Sequence record: NC_061447.1
DNA: 64,000 nt
Strand: one strand, 5' to 3'
The notes under the pieces were generated by a model. That model was given only the letters and a program-made list of their open reading frames with translations, was not told where the DNA came from and ran no database searches. Below are positions 12,191-32,988 of this stretch, piece after piece. Numbering within the stretch: the stretch's first letter is position 1; each line of letters starts with the position of its first letter. The translations under genes were made by a program, and so were the position numbers.

Positions 12191-12574
12191 ATGGATAAGA
12201 AAATAATCAGTTTTCTTGTGGACAGTCTAAGCAGTGATGAAAGGGAACCTGCGGAGAAGTATGTGGGTAAAACTGCGGGACAAATAGCCAAGGAAGAGAC
12301 AGGCATTGCGTTTATCGTCAACAACGCATTCGCCATGAATCATCTTCTTTGGTTGCCTGATATGGAGCATGATTGGTTCACACCAGTCGAAGCCCTGATT
12401 CATTTATCAAGCGGTCTTATTGGTCATGTCGGCGATGTGCCTGTTTACAGCGATTGGTATTACGGTAGCCCGAGTGACCGTCAGCGGCCGTGTGATAAAA
12501 TAGCTCGCGTGGGCGTCGTCGATATTGCGGCCAATCAAATTTCTTTGCTGACTGTCGAACAATTTGCTCGCTAA
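12191..12574 (+). CDS. hypothetical protein
   Basis: AAGGA SD, 127 aa. Confidence 0.65.
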   Translation: MDKKIISFLVDSLSSDEREPAEKYVGKTAGQIAKEETGIAFIVNNAFAMNHLLWLPDMEHDWFTPVEALIHLSSGLIGHVGDVPVYSDWYYGSPSDRQRPCDKIARVGVVDIAANQISLLTVEQFAR

Positions 12575-12615: not shown

Positions 12616-13386
12616 ATGAGCAACGTTGATAAAACAATGCCGGAAGGTCGCTGGGAGTTCAATGAGCCAGTAGCTTCTGTGTTCGATAACATGCTGCAAA
12701 ACTCAATCCCATCGTATGACCGTATGCGTGACCTGACGTACCGTCTTGGTCGCCAGTTCGTAACACCTGGCTCGGCCATTGTCGATCTTGGCGCATCACT
12801 CGGTCGTGCTGTCGAACCGTTCTGTGCAGAGTTCGGCGAGTACCTGTATCTTCACGCTGCTGATCGTCCTGAGCCAGACCGTGAAGTAGGTAACCTGTAC
12901 TGCTGCTACGAAGTCGCGCCTGCGATGCTTGAGCGTCTGCGTGAAAACCCTGTGCTGAAAACGGCTAAAGCGAAGATCAGTAGTGAGTCGCTGGTGGAAG
13001 TAGACACGTTCCGCTTCGACGAGCAGGTTGAGTGCTCACTGATTCTGTCTGTGCTTACTCTACAGTTCACGCCGATTGAACACCGTCAGCACATCCTGGA
13101 GAAAGTGTACGACTCGTTGCAGAAAGGCGGCGCGTTTATTCTGGTTGAGAAAGTGTTGGGTGATGACAACTTCCTCGACCGTCTGCTGGTAGACACCTAC
13201 TACGGCATGAAAGGCGATAACGGCTACTCGCAAGAATCTATTGCGGCTAAGCGTAAGTCCCTCGAAGGCGTACTGGTGCCTGTGAAAGCTGCATGGAACG
13301 AAGAACTGCTGCGTAAAGCTGGCTTCGACCGTGTAGAGTGTTTCTACCGCGACCTGAACTTTGCTGGATGGATCGCAGTCAAATAA
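12616..13386 (+). CDS. cmoA: carboxy-S-adenosyl-L-methionine synthase (CmoA-like)
   Basis: WEFNEPVASVFDNMLQNSIPSY, DLGASLG, LTLQF, GGAFILVEK, NGYSQESIAAKRKSLE, AGF...LNF are colinear with E. coli CmoA, including the KR Arg. Confidence 0.88.
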   Translation: MSNVDKTMPEGRWEFNEPVASVFDNMLQNSIPSYDRMRDLTYRLGRQFVTPGSAIVDLGASLGRAVEPFCAEFGEYLYLHAADRPEPDREVGNLYCCYEVAPAMLERLRENPVLKTAKAKISSESLVEVDTFRFDEQVECSLILSVLTLQFTPIEHRQHILEKVYDSLQKGGAFILVEKVLGDDNFLDRLLVDTYYGMKGDNGYSQESIAAKRKSLEGVLVPVKAAWNEELLRKAGFDRVECFYRDLNFAGWIAVK

Positions 13387-13397
13387 GGTAAAACGAA

Positions 13398-14453
13398 ATG
13401 AGCGTAAGTGGTGATATTTATAACATCCCTCAACCGTTCGCCATGTATTGTGGCAACTGTGAAACTCGTGCTCAGGCAAAAGTTGCCTCAGGCACAATCG
13501 AATGGGCGGCAGAGAAAGTCTGCTGCGTTGTTGCCGACGATAACGGCCTGTTCCCTGATGTGCCTCACGTCAACATCGCAAGCGTCCATGCCACAGATGC
13601 ACGTACTCTGGTAATCGGCTGTGCACCGTTCGGCGGTAAGATTGACGAGCACATGGACCGCACTATTCGCAGTGCTATCTATCGTGGCATGAACGTCGCT
13701 GCCGCTATGCACAATCGTCTGGCTGATAATGCCGAGTACGTTGCGTTGGCCGAACAGTATAACGTCAAGCTGTATGACTTCCGCCACCGTCCTGATGCGT
13801 ACCCTCTAGGTACTGGCGAGAAGCGCAAAGGCATTCGTCTGCTAACTGTTGGCACCGATAGCTCCTGCGGTAAGAAGTTCACGACGTTGACTCTGTTTAA
13901 CGCGCTTAAGGCTCGTCATCCAGATACCGTATTCTGCTCTACTGGCCAGACTGGTTTTCTGATCAGTAACTGCGGCATCAACAACGATACGCTGGTGGCT
14001 GACTTCCTTGCAGGTGCTGCTGAGTCTTTATCTCCAGATGGTCCTGCTGATCGTGTGTATCTGATCGAAGGTCAGGGTGCTATTACTCACCCAGCGTATA
14101 CTGGCGGCAGCATGAGCCTGATTGCTGGCTCGCAGCCTGACTACTTCATCATGTGTCATGCGTGGGGCCGTAAGAACCAGCTCGGTGTTAAACGTGCGCC
14201 TGACCTGACATTCGAATTGACTGCTAACCTGGACGCAGCGGCCATTCACGGTCTTACTCCTGAGTATCTCGGTATCAGTGTCAATTTCTCTGAAAGCGAC
14301 CTGACTATCGAAGAACAAGACGATGCTATGCGCGAGATGGAGGACCTGTACTCGATGCCTGTGTTCGACCCATCGCGCGATCTGTCTTACGTTGCTGACA
14401 TTGCTGATCGACTTGAACGAGAGGCTATGTGCAGGAGCGAGTCCAATGGCTAA
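13398..14453 (+). CDS. DUF1611 family protein (DgcN-like, Rossmann plus P-loop)
   Basis: LLTVGTDSSCGKKFT, STGQTG, DFLAGAAE, IEGQGAITHPAY, GSQPD..IMCH. Confidence 0.85.
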   Translation: MSVSGDIYNIPQPFAMYCGNCETRAQAKVASGTIEWAAEKVCCVVADDNGLFPDVPHVNIASVHATDARTLVIGCAPFGGKIDEHMDRTIRSAIYRGMNVAAAMHNRLADNAEYVALAEQYNVKLYDFRHRPDAYPLGTGEKRKGIRLLTVGTDSSCGKKFTTLTLFNALKARHPDTVFCSTGQTGFLISNCGINNDTLVADFLAGAAESLSPDGPADRVYLIEGQGAITHPAYTGGSMSLIAGSQPDYFIMCHAWGRKNQLGVKRAPDLTFELTANLDAAAIHGLTPEYLGISVNFSESDLTIEEQDDAMREMEDLYSMPVFDPSRDLSYVADIADRLEREAMCRSESNG

Positions 14454-15315
14454 ACATCCTCTTCGCAAGCTGTTTGAACAGCACGTAAAGAAAGAGGTCA
14501 AAGCCAAAGAAGTGGCCGTTCTGCTTTCGAGCGGCCTCGACGGTTTGGTTAGCGCACTCGCCGCGCACGATCTCGGCATGAAGGTCCATGCCTTTACTTT
14601 CCAGATGGGCGACAACCAGAGCTTCGATAGCAAACACGCCGCAATCGTCGCACAGAAGATGGGCTGGGAGTTCACGCTCGTCAAAGTGCCTACGTCTGAC
14701 AGTGCTATCGCTCAGGGTTGGAAGACGCTACATAAAAAGTTCCGCTGCATTAAGAAGCGTGACTATGAGTGTGCGTACCCTATGGTGTATTGCTACAAGG
14801 CGATCAAAGAAGCTGGGTTTAAGTATGTGCTCAGTGGTCTGGTGGCCGACGGTTACTTCCTGTATAACCGCAATACGCACATTCAGAAAGTAAGTGGCCC
14901 GCACTCAGTCGCTGAAAAGTATCACGCGTACCGCACCGAATACTTCCGCCCGTGGATCAAAGACGGTAAGAAGTCTCTCGGTGTTGATGGGTATAACCCA
15001 AGCGGTATGCTGCAACACGAAATGCTGTGTGACCACTTCGGCCTCGTTCACGTTAACCCGTGGATGCAGCCGAAAGTATTTGATTACTTCATCAAGTACA
15101 CATGGCAGGAACTCAATCAGCCTAAGCAGAAACAACCTATTACAGAAGCATGGGCTGACCACATCGCTATTGTAGGGCATCGCCCACATCGCGGATATCA
15201 AACAGAAGCTGGAGTACCTGCGTACTTCGAACGCTTACTGGATAATCCTGAGATCAACTTCAACGGGCGCAAGCGTATCATGGATGTTGCCCGTGATTGG
15301 TCAACGAGGACGTAA
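14446..15315 (+). CDS. asparagine-synthetase-like ATP-dependent amide ligase (synthetase domain only)
   Basis: PP-loop VLLSSGLDG, AFTF, VLSGLVADGYF (cf. SGEGADE); no N-terminal Ntn glutaminase domain. Confidence 0.78.
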   Translation: MAKHPLRKLFEQHVKKEVKAKEVAVLLSSGLDGLVSALAAHDLGMKVHAFTFQMGDNQSFDSKHAAIVAQKMGWEFTLVKVPTSDSAIAQGWKTLHKKFRCIKKRDYECAYPMVYCYKAIKEAGFKYVLSGLVADGYFLYNRNTHIQKVSGPHSVAEKYHAYRTEYFRPWIKDGKKSLGVDGYNPSGMLQHEMLCDHFGLVHVNPWMQPKVFDYFIKYTWQELNQPKQKQPITEAWADHIAIVGHRPHRGYQTEAGVPAYFERLLDNPEINFNGRKRIMDVARDWSTRT

Positions 15316-15316
15316 C

Positions 15317-15937
15317 ATGTTAGTACACATCATTGACGGTGGCGTAGGCTGCAATTATGTAGCTGAGAAATTGCGTGAGTCGAATATCAACTGTCGCACT
15401 CATGCTCCAAACAATCCGCGCATTCGCGCTCAGTATGCTCCTTATCCTTCACTGTCTATGGGCTTTGAGGCACAGGAGATCGAGAAACATATCGGTAACG
15501 TGCTGGGCACCTATCGCGGACTGTTCCTGATCAGTAGTTACGTCGGCTCTCTTGTTGCACGTAGCATGATTGATCAATGCGGCCAGAGCCATAACATCAT
15601 CTATTGTGATGACTTGCAGTGTGGCTCAACGCCTGTTGTTGCTTCCTCAATTTCTGTAAACATCTACAAGAAGCAACGGCAACTCGGACGCATCGCTGGG
15701 CGCATCAAACACTTCGACCTTGACCACGAATTTATTATCGCTGATAAGTCAGTGCGGTTCGCGTCAGGCTTGGAGTTTGATGAACGCGGCGCGCGTGAAG
15801 AACTGGACGATACGCCTAAGTTCTTATCGAGTCCGTCAATGATTGTTGCAGCACACAAACTCGGTGTGAAGCGCAGCATGTATCACAACTATGCAGGGTT
15901 GGTGCGAGAGTTCCTTGAAAAGCGCCAGCAGCAATAA
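15317..15937 (+). CDS. divergent Asp/Glu racemase (MurI)-like protein
   Basis: IIDGGVG (cf. VFDSGVG), APYPSLS (cf. FPYGEKS), LISSYVGS where MurI has VACNTAS; catalytic Cys residues not evident. Confidence 0.45.
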   Translation: MLVHIIDGGVGCNYVAEKLRESNINCRTHAPNNPRIRAQYAPYPSLSMGFEAQEIEKHIGNVLGTYRGLFLISSYVGSLVARSMIDQCGQSHNIIYCDDLQCGSTPVVASSISVNIYKKQRQLGRIAGRIKHFDLDHEFIIADKSVRFASGLEFDERGAREELDDTPKFLSSPSMIVAAHKLGVKRSMYHNYAGLVREFLEKRQQQ

Positions 15938-22494: not shown

Positions 22495-22885
22495 TGATGC
22501 CTCGTCCGATGAAATCCGCCGTTACTACGAGCAGATTCATCGTGATGCCGAAGCGGTCATGCAGCAGGTGTGGGCGCTTCGTGGTTGGACTGTACGTTGG
22601 GCATGGCACAATGGCATTTGCGACGATTGTGAGTTTGTCTTTGACGAGACAGGCAAGTGTCGGGGTACTAAGTCTGACTGCATCCCACAACAAATGGGCA
22701 TAGCTGATCGCATTGACGAGCTAAAGCTGTTTGTCTCGCATACCAAGAAATCTGTAAAGATCAGCAACAAGGGCGATGAAAATCCAGTTGAAGGTAAAGG
22801 CCGTAATCTGCGGCTTGCCTATCTTGATTGGTTGCTCAACGTCGAAAAGAGAAAAGCGGAGGAAAGAACGTGCGCTGCACCTTAA
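22475..22885 (+). CDS. hypothetical protein
   Basis: GGGAG SD before ATG 22475. Confidence 0.65.
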   Translation: MYRQLSDDASSDEIRRYYEQIHRDAEAVMQQVWALRGWTVRWAWHNGICDDCEFVFDETGKCRGTKSDCIPQQMGIADRIDELKLFVSHTKKSVKISNKGDENPVEGKGRNLRLAYLDWLLNVEKRKAEERTCAAP

Positions 22886-23391
22886 ACGAATTACCGATTA
22901 ACATCACTCAGGCTGAACACATCATGGCGAGCGTGTTTACTCTGGCTGGTGCTTCAAAGTCAAAACGTCGTGCGACTGCTGCGATGTTGATTCATTTCCA
23001 CAACGGCTTCCCTACCATTGTGAGCAGCGGCGTTAACGGTACTGAGCCTGGCGCAAGCAACGTCATGGAGAACGAAGACCTGACGTTATCGCTCGACACG
23101 GTTATCCATGCAGAGGTGAACTGCCTAAACCGCATGGAAGAGTACAGCATGTGGGCAAACGAAGAAGATATTCTGTTCTGCACCGATTCGCCGTGCCCTA
23201 ACTGTTTGGCTGATCTCGAAGCCGAAGGCGTTAAGACAGTTGTGTATGCGCGTGAATATCGCCTGACTGATCATCTGGACGCATCTCCTATCAAGATGTT
23301 CTGTCTGGATATGGACAGCGTTGTCCGGCGTATGCAGCACGGCATCGACCGCATCAAAGAAGTGATCGCAACAACACCAGCGTCTAACTAA
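22870..23391 (+). CDS. dCMP deaminase
   Basis: GVNG, IHAEVN, TDSPCPNC, VVYAREYR zinc-deaminase motifs. Confidence 0.88.
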   Translation: MRCTLNELPINITQAEHIMASVFTLAGASKSKRRATAAMLIHFHNGFPTIVSSGVNGTEPGASNVMENEDLTLSLDTVIHAEVNCLNRMEEYSMWANEEDILFCTDSPCPNCLADLEAEGVKTVVYAREYRLTDHLDASPIKMFCLDMDSVVRRMQHGIDRIKEVIATTPASN

Positions 23392-26712: not shown

Positions 26713-27071
26713 CTCCAGTAATTCGCTTTGATGCTAAGACGCGTGAACTGCTGGCAAAGATCTTCGGCATACACAAGCCGTTCTTTGTCGTGCGTCGAGA
26801 TACAATCATTGGCGGCCCAGGTCCTGATTCAGATTTAGGTTCAGCGCTGGGCTTTCGTGTGTATCTGTCTAATGGCACGAACACTGTTACCGTTCCTCGC
26901 GTCAAAGGTCTTGACCTTGGCGACAAGCTCTATCTGGGCGAAGACGAGGAAGTGTACGAATGGCATCCGCATTTCGACCGTGAGTACATGGCAGTCGGTG
27001 ATAGCCAACCAGAAGCACTCGCCTTCGAACTCCATCCAATCATCTACCATAAAGACAGACGGAACTCGTAA
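26709..27071 (+). CDS. hypothetical protein
   Basis: ATGA overlap. Confidence 0.65.
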   Translation: MTPVIRFDAKTRELLAKIFGIHKPFFVVRRDTIIGGPGPDSDLGSALGFRVYLSNGTNTVTVPRVKGLDLGDKLYLGEDEEVYEWHPHFDREYMAVGDSQPEALAFELHPIIYHKDRRNS

Positions 27072-28177
27072 TGAGCAAACAACAAACCCTTGATCTGCGT
27101 GACCCTAACCAGTACGAACTCTACTCTCTACATTGCGTAGACGAGCAGTACATCAATCTGGGCAACGCTATCATGATGCACGGTACCGACGAAACGGACC
27201 CAGGCCGCACCGAAGATACGTGGCGCACTCTGATTGGTGTTGGATTCCAGTTGTCTAACACGCTGATCGCTTTCCCTGCGCTGGTGTCTGCGCGTAAGAA
27301 CTGGTACGCTGCTGTAGATGAAATGTGCTGGATGGCTCGCGGTGAAACGAACATCGGCAGCCTCGGCTCCAAAATCTGGAACGAGTGGGCAGACGAAGAC
27401 GGCGAGTGCGGTCCTATCTACGGTCTGATGTGGCGTATGTGGCCTGATATCAAAACGTTCCCGACTATTGAGTCGATGAAAGAACGTCAGATTAGCGATG
27501 CTGAAATCGAGCGTATCTCCAAAGAGATCAATCGCATGAAAGCCGCTGGTTATACCGAAACACAAATGGCAGATGGCCGTGTGTGCTATGAAGGTACTGT
27601 TGATCAGTTCGCTGATGCTCTGCGCCAAGTGATGAACCGCAGTCGCTCTCGTCGTATTCGCGTTCAGGCATATAACCCAGCGTATCTCCACATGCAGGGT
27701 CTGCCTCCGTGCCACACCGAGTTCGAGTTCAACGTCACTAAGCCGACGCTGTATGAAGTTGCTCAGATGGAAGCGCGTCAAATGGCACCTGCCGAAGATA
27801 CGCTGCATATCACTGTGACCATGCGTTCCAACGATGTGCTGCTTGGGCGTCCGTTCAATATCATGGGCTACAGTGCGATGCACCAGATGATCGCCAAGTG
27901 GGCTGGCCTGAACGTAGGTAGCTTTACGCTGAACACTACCAACACTCACCTGTATACGCATCACTTCGAAGCGTTTGAAAAGCAACGTGAGCAGTGGGCA
28001 GTTCTCGCAGACAACATGAAACGCACAGGCGAACCTGTTGTCTATCCTATGCTGGAAATCAGCGACGACATTCTCGGCCTGACGCCAGAAGAGTTGCTGG
28101 ACAACGCCAACGCAGAGTGGTTCCAGCTCCTCGATTATGCGCCATCACCAGCGGTTAAGGGACGTGTGACCAAATGA
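27071..28177 (+). CDS. thyA: thymidylate synthase
   Basis: IWNEWADEDG.CGPIYG, SRRI, LPPCH, MRSNDVLLGRPFN, THLY; dUMP-type Asn. Confidence 0.92.
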   Translation: MSKQQTLDLRDPNQYELYSLHCVDEQYINLGNAIMMHGTDETDPGRTEDTWRTLIGVGFQLSNTLIAFPALVSARKNWYAAVDEMCWMARGETNIGSLGSKIWNEWADEDGECGPIYGLMWRMWPDIKTFPTIESMKERQISDAEIERISKEINRMKAAGYTETQMADGRVCYEGTVDQFADALRQVMNRSRSRRIRVQAYNPAYLHMQGLPPCHTEFEFNVTKPTLYEVAQMEARQMAPAEDTLHITVTMRSNDVLLGRPFNIMGYSAMHQMIAKWAGLNVGSFTLNTTNTHLYTHHFEAFEKQREQWAVLADNMKRTGEPVVYPMLEISDDILGLTPEELLDNANAEWFQLLDYAPSPAVKGRVTK

Positions 28178-30145: not shown

Positions 30146-30856
30146 ATGGCAAAAACTGCTATCAAAGCAAAGGACGGGAAAAAGAAAAAGAATGACGGAC
30201 TAAAGTTTGAGTTGAATAAACTCAGCTCCGTCTCTCAGTTGAAGGGGGCTACGTACAACCCGCGTTTCATTACAGACAGTCGCCTGAAAGCACTCGAAGG
30301 TTCTTTGGGTAGCTTCGGCGACTTGTCTGGTATCGTGTTCAACAACAACATCAAATCTGGTGTGTTGATCTCTGGCCACCAGCGCCTGAAATCAATCGAA
30401 GGCTGGAAGACTCGTATCGAGATTCAGAAGTCTGTTGATAAGCACGGCACAATCGGCCTGGGTTACATTCACGCGACGCATCCAAAGAAAGCTGATAAAG
30501 TGATCAGCATTCCTCTGCGTGTCGTGAACTGGACCGATAAGAAAGCCGAGTACGCTGCGAACATCGCGGCAAACGCCCATGGCGGTGAGTTCGATAACAA
30601 GAAACTCGCCAAGCTGGTTGAACAACTCGACCTCAATACAATCAAGCCTCAACTGCTCGGTCTCGACCCGTTAGAAATTCGCGGTCTTCAAGCCAAGCTG
30701 AAAGTTCAGGCCGTTGTGCAGGACGAGAAACGTGCTGGCAAGACTACTGGCCAGATGAACGGTAGTACAGGCAAGTTCAACGAGTATAGCCCAGATGATG
30801 TGGGTGACGCTCTGAACTGCACCTGCCCGCGTTGTGGATTCAAGTTCGAGGGATAA
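30146..30856 (+). CDS. ParB/Srx-like N-terminal domain protein with CPRCG tail
   Basis: YNPR.I...L..SL..FG...IVFN...LISGHQRL...ANIAAN...GEFD; C-terminal CTCPRCGFKF. Confidence 0.8.
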   Translation: MAKTAIKAKDGKKKKNDGLKFELNKLSSVSQLKGATYNPRFITDSRLKALEGSLGSFGDLSGIVFNNNIKSGVLISGHQRLKSIEGWKTRIEIQKSVDKHGTIGLGYIHATHPKKADKVISIPLRVVNWTDKKAEYAANIAANAHGGEFDNKKLAKLVEQLDLNTIKPQLLGLDPLEIRGLQAKLKVQAVVQDEKRAGKTTGQMNGSTGKFNEYSPDDVGDALNCTCPRCGFKFEG

Positions 30857-30858
30857 TA

Positions 30859-32988
30859 ATGATCATCAAGCCGCCTACGATGAAGGAAATCAACAAGCTG
30901 GATAAACCCTGGCGTGGTATGAGTTTCTTCGCAGGTTGCGGTGGTTCTTCTACCGGTCACAAGATGGCCGGTATCAACATCGTGCTGAGTAACGAGTTTG
31001 TTGACTCGGCGCGTGAGTCGTATGAAGCAAACCACCCGACAACCAAAGTGCTGCCGCATGATATTCGTCGCTTAGACCCAGGCAAGCTGATGCGCTATGC
31101 TGGTCTGTCTAAAGGCGAATTGGATTTACTTGACGGTAGTCCTCCTTGCTTTACCGAAGACACTATCATTCATACAGCAGACGGCATGAAGTTCATCTCG
31201 GACATGAACGTCGGCGATAAAGCGATGACAAGCATCGGTCAGTATCTTCCTGTGTATGACACTATGGTTCGTCCGTATGTCGGTACTATGCACAAGATTG
31301 AAACTCTGATCAGTGCAAACAACGCAACGCCCGAGCATCCGTTCTTCATTCGTCGTCCGCTTGAGTCTGGTGGCTTCTCTGACCCGTTCTGGTGTGACGC
31401 TAAAGACGTGCAGGAAGGTGACCTGGTCGGTACTCCAAGAACTACTCCTGACATTGGTGCAGATGCAGTACACGCCCAGATGGAACAACTGCCGAAGTTG
31501 ATTCAGCAGTGGGTGAGCATCCCTGAGTTCTGGTGGATGGTAGGTCACTGGTGTGATCGCGGTTCAATCGAGACTGTTAGTGGTGTAGAAGTTGTTAGCT
31601 TCGAATCGCATACCAGTCTGGAAAACGCGATGATTGAGCAGGCGTTTGATGCGCTTAAACTCAGTAGCCTGAACCGTATCGACCGCATGACAGCACAACG
31701 TAAAACGTTCCGTACTGTTATCGACGCCGAGCTGGTGCAGTTCCTGCGCCGCTTCGTCAGTGCTGGCAACAACACGTTCTCTCGTCGTCTACCTGCTCTG
31801 GTATTCCACCTGAGCACCGAGCTGAAACGTCAATTCATTCTCGGCTGCGCTGGGCATGACTACGTTACAGCGATGGGCACTGGCCTTGCTATCACGTCTT
31901 CAAGCAAGCGCTTCCTGTTAGAGATGAACTACCTGTGCTGTTCTGCGTTCAACCGTCCGCTATTCGACGGAATGATTTGGGGCGACGTGTACTTCGGTAG
32001 CGCGTTAACTCCAAAAGAGCGTAACAGTGCGCGTGAACATCTCGGCTATTTGTTCCTGCAGGAAGAGCACAACTTCTTCCACGAGTTCGATAAAGAAGAC
32101 CCGAACCTGTGGGTACAAGTGATTGAGAACCTTGCGTATCAGGCAACTTGTGACGTCTATAACTTCTCGGTTGAAGTTGACGAAACCTACGTGGCTAATG
32201 GTACTGTGGTGCACAACTGCAAAGGCTTCTCGACTGCTGGCGTGAAAGAAGAAGGCTGGGGCAAAGAAGTTAAGTACAGCGATAACAAGTATCAGCAGGT
32301 TGATGACCTGTTCGATCAGTATTGCCGTATGCTGGAAGGCATGATGCCGAAAGTGTTCACTGCGGAGAACGTTAGTGGTCTTGTTAAGGGCGCTTCGAAA
32401 GGTTACTTCATCGAGATCATGAAAGAGTTCGACAGGATTGGGTATTACGTCCGAGCGCCGCTGCTTAACGCTGCCTGGCTCGGTGTGCCTCAGTCCCGTG
32501 AGCGTATCATCTTCATGGGTGTACGCAAAGACGTAGCACACGCTCTCGGTCACAAGAGCATTAAGACCGCTGTGCCTGATGTTGTGCCTTGTGACACAAT
32601 GGCATTCCTTGCCGATGCGCTGCCGCATATTCAACGGTATAAGTCCACGAAGAAAGATATCATTACGTATCTGCCTGCGATGAACGGACCGATGCCGACT
32701 ATCACTGCGGCCGATGCGATAGCCTATGAAACTGCGCGGTTCTCGTCTGCTGGTTTCATCGAAGATAACAAAGGCCATCGCCGTAAACTGACCATCGACG
32801 AACTCAAAGTTATTTCTGGTCTGCCCTCTGACTATAAGCTGGTGGGCAAATTCGAAGAACAATGGGAGCGTCTCGGTCGTATCTGTGTGCCAGCAATGAC
32901 ACACGCTGCATCCAAAGCGCTTATCGAACACGTCTTACTTCCGTACGCGAAGAAGCGTAAGAAGAAGCCTGGCGATATCTTCAAGTAA
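30859..32988 (+). CDS. C5-cytosine DNA methyltransferase homolog with intein; motif X GN->GR (candidate carboxymethyltransferase)
   Basis: Motif I FFAGCGG, IV GSPP/C (split by intein), VI AENV, VIII QSRERIIF, X WERLGRICVP. Confidence 0.9.
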   Translation: MIIKPPTMKEINKLDKPWRGMSFFAGCGGSSTGHKMAGINIVLSNEFVDSARESYEANHPTTKVLPHDIRRLDPGKLMRYAGLSKGELDLLDGSPPCFTEDTIIHTADGMKFISDMNVGDKAMTSIGQYLPVYDTMVRPYVGTMHKIETLISANNATPEHPFFIRRPLESGGFSDPFWCDAKDVQEGDLVGTPRTTPDIGADAVHAQMEQLPKLIQQWVSIPEFWWMVGHWCDRGSIETVSGVEVVSFESHTSLENAMIEQAFDALKLSSLNRIDRMTAQRKTFRTVIDAELVQFLRRFVSAGNNTFSRRLPALVFHLSTELKRQFILGCAGHDYVTAMGTGLAITSSSKRFLLEMNYLCCSAFNRPLFDGMIWGDVYFGSALTPKERNSAREHLGYLFLQEEHNFFHEFDKEDPNLWVQVIENLAYQATCDVYNFSVEVDETYVANGTVVHNCKGFSTAGVKEEGWGKEVKYSDNKYQQVDDLFDQYCRMLEGMMPKVFTAENVSGLVKGASKGYFIEIMKEFDRIGYYVRAPLLNAAWLGVPQSRERIIFMGVRKDVAHALGHKSIKTAVPDVVPCDTMAFLADALPHIQRYKSTKKDIITYLPAMNGPMPTITAADAIAYETARFSSAGFIEDNKGHRRKLTIDELKVISGLPSDYKLVGKFEEQWERLGRICVPAMTHAASKALIEHVLLPYAKKRKKKPGDIFK
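31147..32217 (+). mobile_element. intein (357 aa) with degenerate LAGLIDADG region, inserted before the catalytic Cys
   Basis: CFTEDT..., block B ATPEHP, block F/G VYNFSVEVDETYVANGTVVHN then Cys+1; LAGLIDADG-like boxes (MVGHWCDRGS, FILGCAGHD) lack canonical acidic residues. Confidence 0.9.

Follow-up and report, generated by a model that had tools for sequence, protein, structure and literature searches.

In the CmoA/CmoX/CmoY pathway described for Synechococcus phage S-B43 (Yang et al., Nat Commun, December 2025; PMC12783734), CmoA produces carboxy-S-adenosylmethionine (carboxy-SAM), the C5-methyltransferase homologue CmoX, whose Arg350 binds the carboxyl of carboxy-SAM, generates 5-carboxymethylcytosine (5cxmC) in DNA, and CmoY, a glutaminase-less AsnB homologue, ligates glycine to the 5cxmC-DNA in an ATP-dependent reaction. 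Evidence for this last step comes from E. coli, from in vitro assays and from virion DNA, and the S-B43 ligase (SpCmoY) needs no partner protein. It is the one ligase characterised so far; the authors consider that other ligase clusters probably use other amines, and they find a ParB-like gene preceding many CmoX genes (PMC12783734). Here we analyse gp019 (14446-15315, + strand), a gene in a 64,000-nucleotide window that comprises bases 1-64000 of the Erwinia jumbo phage pEa_SNUABM_33 (NC_061447.1; 263 kb), which belongs to the genus Alexandravirus. Judged by sequence comparison, gp019 probably encodes a CmoY-type ATP-dependent amide ligase acting on phage DNA. The idea of such a ligase is already published (PMC12783734); the clade to which the pEa_SNUABM_33 enzyme belongs is the part that is new.

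The proposed gp019 ligase and putative carboxymethylation genes

The gp019 reading frame translates without a stop into 289 residues, and its ratio of nonsynonymous to synonymous substitution rates (dN/dS 0.08-0.12 against five orthologues) identifies a real gene under purifying selection. The protein is annotated as "hypothetical protein" in pEa_SNUABM_33 and is 100% identical to AD1_018 of Dickeya phage vB_DsoM_AD1, which is annotated as "putative asparagine synthase". The Pfam Asn_synthase match (1.2e-13) spans residues 6-138 only (model positions 2-132), and TIGR01536, the model of glutamine-hydrolysing AsnB, matches from model position 235 onwards, with 56.4 bits against a cut-off of 267.1. 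Because the matches are confined to the synthetase part, gp019 lacks a glutaminase domain and starts where the AsnB synthetase domain starts, as an earlier sequence-only reading of the window had described it. The AlphaFold model of gp019 (predicted local distance difference test (pLDDT) 93.8, predicted template modelling (pTM) score 0.91) has as its top fold matches the synthetase domains of human and E. coli asparagine synthetase, beta-lactam synthetase and carbapenam synthetase. A sequence search of the PDB with the single gp019 protein returned no match, while profile and fold searches did.

SpCmoY (A0A514ABJ0 / QDH50619), whose gene was also hit by tblastn, is likewise a stand-alone AsnB-type synthetase domain of ~270-290 residues that can be aligned with gp019 from end to end (34% identity over 276 aligned residues, E 5e-52), and gp019 and the SpCmoY-type sequences fit a single family alignment with 33 invariant columns. 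Residues S28, G30, D32, D61, C101, K103, K104, E108, D135, K229, H248, R275, R277, D280 and D284 are invariant in both enzymes, and both are encoded by a phage that also carries CmoA and an Arg-variant CmoX. According to the sequence-only reading, gp019 would catalyse a second step in which an external amine is joined as an amide to carboxymethylcytosine. This is the activity of SpCmoY, and the proposal gains support from the full-length homology and from the presence of CmoA and CmoX.

To place the motifs of gp019, a profile of 20 homologues was aligned to E. coli AsnB (1ct9). The PP-loop variant S-S-G-L-D-G (residues 28-33; 14527-14544, + strand) falls on AsnB S234-S239 (SGGLDS); S28, G30 and D32 are invariant in the family, and S29 and G33 mark the clade of gp019, clade A (see below). 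SGLVADG (residues 130-136), which together with the following YFLYNRNTHIQ occupies 14833-14886 (+ strand), falls on AsnB S346-E352 (SGEGSDE). Here D135 preserves AsnB D351, whereas L132 stands in place of E348, and the Glu348 motif of AsnB is absent from gp019. The AsnB segment TYDVTTIRA becomes CIKKRDYEC, which lies in the segment KKFRCIKKRDYEC (residues 97-109; 14734-14772, + strand), where C101, K103, K104, E108 and C109 are invariant or nearly so. Further downstream, HRPHRG (residues 245-250; 15178-15195, + strand) contains the family-invariant H248 and is otherwise specific to clade A. The motifs that the sequence-only reading had picked out, SSGLDG, SGLVADG, the basic patch KKFRCIKKR (residues 97-105) and HRPHRG, are all present in the translation. 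Its suggestion that the basic patches suit a DNA substrate holds for K103 and K104, which are invariant family-wide, but less well for HRPHRG, which is clade-specific, and the isoelectric point of 9.4 contrasts with 5.8 in SpCmoY. The replacement of the aspartyl-AMP-binding segment of AsnB by one with K103 and K104 fits a new substrate, although it proves nothing.

The window also encodes the enzymes that would supply the substrate. Two genes upstream of gp019, gp017 (12616-13386, + strand) encodes a CmoA homologue, a predicted carboxy-SAM synthase (TIGR00740, 3.5e-42; 30% identical to SpCmoA). The CmoX homologue gp050 (30859-32988, + strand), of the C5-cytosine carboxymethyltransferase type, consists of two SpCmoX-matching parts (53% and 31% identity) separated by a 357-residue intein (residues 97-453; 31147-32217, + strand), which is inserted at the catalytic cysteine (GSPP/C...HN/CKGFS). 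Splicing restores the SPPC motif, and Arg674 in motif X aligns with SpCmoX Arg350. With the intein at the catalytic cysteine, the carboxymethyltransferase, and hence the substrate of gp019, would depend on protein splicing. Directly upstream of gp050 lies the ParB-like gene gp049 (30146-30856, + strand), a pairing that recurs in a metagenomic relative (L007), and metagenomic relatives carry the ligase in one block with CmoX, CmoA and ParB. The complete pEa_SNUABM_33 genome contains one AsnB-like gene, one C5-methyltransferase and no CmoB. From this gene content we infer that 5cxmC in DNA would be the substrate of gp019.

Two ligase clades, a DUF1611 partner and a racemase-like gene

Alignment of 62 distinct ligases, drawn from protein searches and from 80 IMG/VR loci, separates two clades. 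Clade A, which includes gp019, comprises 11 sequences down to 57% identity to gp019, with the PP-loop SSGLD[GS], a 13+4-residue insertion and the motif HRPHRGYQTE. Clade B, which includes SpCmoY, comprises 50 sequences that are 35-40% identical to gp019 and all read SGG[VIT]DS. SpCmoY itself has SGGVDS and thus differs from gp019 at positions 29 and 33 while keeping S28, G30 and D32; it lacks both HRPHRGYQTE and the insertion, which in gp019 lies around positions 147-183. Since the SSG variant is fixed in all 11 clade-A sequences, the altered PP-loop is a clade trait rather than decay. On these alignments, gp019 is a member of an uncharacterised variant clade that is distinct from SpCmoY and has a fixed DUF1611 partner.

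That partner is gp018 (13398-14453, + strand), a DUF1611/DgcN-like gene whose stop overlaps the gp019 start by 8 nt. All contexts read show a DUF1611 gene either adjoining the clade-A ligase or at a distance of one gene. They comprise the window, the IMG/VR loci L012-L019 (including AD1, Alexandra and pEa_SNUABM_22, _7, _3, _1 and _17) and the metagenomic contigs L005-L008 and L093-L098. In contrast, it is found in 0 of 72 clade-B loci and is missing from S-B43; CmoA and CmoX both stand beside the ligase in 47 of these 72. The gp018 protein matches the DgcN model NF041892 (1.5e-83) with 280.5 bits, below the equivalog cut-off of 480, and is a full-length homologue of the solved relative 7xrj (E 9e-81). 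By these scores it is a DgcN homologue and not an equivalog. DgcN is an N-acetyltransferase (D-glutamate N-acetyltransferase) by its NCBIfam name, and PMC12363236 cites it as the key gene in a pathway that racemises D-glutamate. The most basal SSG-type ligase, P0020 (SSGVDS; contig L009), neighbours a 192-residue protein that corresponds to the C-terminal P-loop half of DUF1611 only; this neighbourhood (L009:5193-5771 and L009:2541-3266) also includes an upstream ThiF/E1-like gene.

Seven clade-A lineages have a gene of 300-325 codons between DUF1611 and the ligase; its product shows weak Ala_racemase_N and alr matches and retains the pyridoxal phosphate-lysine motif. This racemase-like gene belongs to most clade-A cassettes and was seen in L016-L019, L007, L093-L095, L097 and L098; a weak GT4-like glycosyltransferase gene is present in many of these cassettes as well, often ahead of DUF1611. 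The racemase-like gene is missing from the window, AD1, Alexandra, pEa_SNUABM_7, L005/L006 and L096, and neither it nor the glycosyltransferase-like gene occurs anywhere in the pEa_SNUABM_33 genome. Three ligase positions divide the two groups with zero exceptions: position 139 is L without the racemase and C or V with it, position 147 is Q as opposed to A, and position 167 is F as opposed to W. L139 and Q147 of gp019 lie in the YFLYNRNTHIQ stretch, and gp019 is of the racemase-less subtype. When the racemase was predicted blind from the ligase motif on three unseen contigs, all three predictions were correct (P0005 without; P0008 and P0014 with). In a maximum-likelihood tree the racemase-bearing lineages are basal and the gene was lost at least twice, in the lineage of the window and in that of L005, each time with the same three substitutions. 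In DUF1611, positions 255 (A versus T), 264 (L/V versus S/T) and 230 also track the racemase. That positions in ligase and DUF1611 alike do so suggests that both proteins recognise the amino-acid moiety. It also suggests, from what is a small sample, that gp019 uses an amine different from that of its racemase-linked relatives.

Proposed pathway and competing readings

These observations, which establish the homology, fold, gene set, purifying selection and distinct clade of gp019, can be combined into a model of the gp019 branch in which the substrate, the amine and the role of gp018 are inferred. CmoA (gp017) would provide carboxy-SAM, and gp050, after splicing, would carboxymethylate C5 of DNA cytosines. 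The gp019 PP-loop would then bind ATP and the 5cxmC carboxylate would be adenylated with release of pyrophosphate, whereupon an external amine would attack the acyl-AMP to form the amide and release AMP. This amine is probably an alpha-amino acid and likely not simply glycine, because clade A goes together with a DgcN-like enzyme and, in its ancestral state, also with an alanine-racemase-like one. Next, gp018 would modify or prepare the amide side chain; most likely it attaches another group there or readies one, and the final DNA base of this branch is probably new. As a broader proposal, to which we give slightly less than even odds, the Alexandravirus-type cassette (CmoA, DUF1611/DgcN-like, clade-A CmoY, with or without the racemase-like and GT4-like genes) may direct undescribed cytosine hypermodifications. 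These would be amides of 5cxmC with a non-glycine amino acid, processed by the DgcN-like enzyme. Cassettes with the racemase would use a D-amino acid, and those that have lost it, such as that of the window, a different substrate. The DNA of the phage in the window would then contain a new base, and positions 139, 147 and 167 of the ligase would form a readable specificity code.

Several points weigh against this interpretation. At two of its six positions the gp019 PP-loop differs from the SGGxDS consensus, the CmoX gene lies 15.5 kb from gp019, and CmoX requires intein splicing. The paper on AD1 contains no statement on restriction or modification of the phage DNA, and that on PaBG lists an asparagine synthase with nothing more on DNA modification. 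The racemase association reflects two independent losses only, which might shrink to a single one if ligase genes have recombined.

Could gp019 simply repeat the SpCmoY reaction, ligating glycine to give 5-glycylcarboxymethylcytosine beside an unrelated DUF1611 neighbour? It is a full-length homologue of the glycine ligase, many basic residues that could bind an alpha-carboxylate (R163, K229, R275 and R277) are invariant in both clades, and in a genome that lacks the racemase and glycosyltransferase-like genes a simple host metabolite would do. We nevertheless consider this unlikely, given only 34% identity, the 13+4-residue insertion and the clade-specific motifs, and given that DUF1611 accompanies every clade-A ligase and no clade-B ligase. 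The fixed-position changes in both ligase and DUF1611 upon racemase loss would also be unexpected if the amine were achiral glycine throughout. Alternatively, the clade-A ligase may only activate the carboxymethyl group, as the acyl-AMP or possibly a coenzyme A (CoA) thioester, and DUF1611 would make the amide, with a D- or L-amino acid as acceptor of the cytosin-5-ylacetyl group, much as acetyl-CoA and D-glutamate yield N-acetyl-D-glutamate. The product of CmoY would formally be an N-acyl amino acid, and such a division of labour would agree with the match of gp018 to the DgcN model and, over its full length, to 7xrj, with the 8-nt overlap of gp018 and gp019 and with the strict co-occurrence of DUF1611 and clade A. 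It appears quite improbable to us, however: SpCmoY works without a partner, the NF041892 score lies far under its cut-off, and sequential decoration of the side chain is more parsimonious.

Action away from DNA, whether on small molecules, on nucleotides or on tRNA (for instance at a uridine-5-oxyacetic acid (cmo5U)-type base), or as an ammonia-dependent asparagine synthetase, we regard as very improbable. CmoA was originally a tRNA-modification enzyme, and the Pfam and NCBIfam domain name is asparagine synthase; against this stand the TIGR01536 score (56 versus a cut-off of 267), the change of AsnB E348 to Leu and of the TTIR segment to KKRDYEC, and the lack of CmoB in the genome. The nearest characterised relative acts on DNA, and the metagenomic blocks unite the ligase with CmoX, CmoA and ParB. 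Hardly credible, finally, is a catalytically dead gp019 that persists as a relic or mere binding protein. SSGLDG does depart from SGGxDS at two positions, but the variant is fixed in 11 of 11 distinct clade-A sequences down to 57% identity, S28, G30, D32 and D135 are invariant, and dN/dS is ~0.1.

The phage is culturable and has a near-identical twin in Dickeya phage AD1, which makes a second ligase clade, with its fixed DUF1611/DgcN-like partner enzyme, tractable. The genus Alexandravirus offers a natural comparison, in which some phages carry the racemase-like and glycosyltransferase-like genes and others do not. Once the product is identified, more would be known of the chemistry by which phages hypermodify their DNA, a phage DUF1611 protein would have its first function, and new amide ligases would be on offer for DNA labelling.

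Neighbouring genes and comparison with known systems

Directly after the ligase cassette lies gp020 (15317-15937, + strand), a neighbour that three phage genera retain irrespective of the ligase type (61% identity to Y3_021 and 26% to pEa_SNUABM_5 gene 16). It has no Pfam match even at E 10 and nothing meaningful in NCBIfam or PHROGs, and its AlphaFold model is not folded (pLDDT 42). The Atlas search gave a weak alpha/beta-hydrolase lead (scores 0.86-0.90). A racemase-like identity was considered and rejected, as BLASTP against a genuine racemase-like neighbour reached E 0.034 only. In Erwinia phages Y3 (Y3_018) and pEa_SNUABM_5, a ligase occupies the same slot as in the window, directly after CmoA and before the gp020 homologue. 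These ligases align with part of the length of gp019, at no more than 24-29% identity, and have no DUF1611 partner; in Y3 (L010:4260-5116), a 49-residue open reading frame and an oxygenase follow the ligase in the place of DUF1611.

Upstream of the cassette, gp016 (12191-12574; 127 residues, no family) lies between gp015 and CmoA, where no gene is annotated in AD1. Elsewhere in the window, a thymidylate-synthase homologue (27071-28177) of 368 residues exceeds the 266-position Pfam model and thus has large insertions, and a deoxycytidylate (dCMP) deaminase gene lies nearby (22870-23391). Several metagenomic contigs carry other genes near the clade-A ligase. On the phage contig L097, a gene for 3-deoxy-D-arabino-heptulosonate 7-phosphate (DAHP) synthase (L097:6876-7739; PF00793, 2.4e-42) lies directly 3' of it and would feed the shikimate pathway, thereby supplying prephenate, the CmoA co-substrate. 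Two jumbo-phage contigs encode a 302-residue GNAT acetyltransferase two to three genes past the racemase-less ligase (L005:7192-8100 and L006:7526-8434). The gene immediately after the ligase in L093 (L093:7943-8419) has a weak match to GmrSD_N, the domain of type IV restriction enzymes, which cleave DNA that is modified.

Near-identical DNA was found in the runs of 13 studies, whose samples span soil, plant, gut, freshwater, fermentation and wastewater. Two wastewater metatranscriptome runs yielded short contigs on the gp019 gene with one to two mismatches; as DNA may be present in such runs, these are no proof of transcription.

The arrangement around gp019 differs from that in S-B43, in which the SpCmoY gene sits between CmoA and CmoX, in that the CmoX gene of pEa_SNUABM_33 is distant and intein-bearing and a DUF1611/DgcN-like partner accompanies the ligase. 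The E. coli and human asparagine synthetases (AsnB, 1ct9, and ASNS) have the synthetase fold in common with gp019 (Foldseek E about 1e-10, template modelling (TM) score 0.67-0.71 on the query), along with the PP-loop position and an SGxxxD motif that places D135 on D351. The Ntn glutaminase domain is found only in AsnB, however, and the loss of E348 and of the TTIR segment sets gp019 apart, as do scores far under the family cut-offs. Beta-lactam and carbapenam synthetases (1mc1 and 1q19) are unlike gp019 in retaining a vestigial N-terminal domain and in acting intramolecularly on small molecules. Despite these differences, they use the AsnB fold to adenylate a carboxylate other than that of aspartate and to form an amide, as proposed here for gp019.

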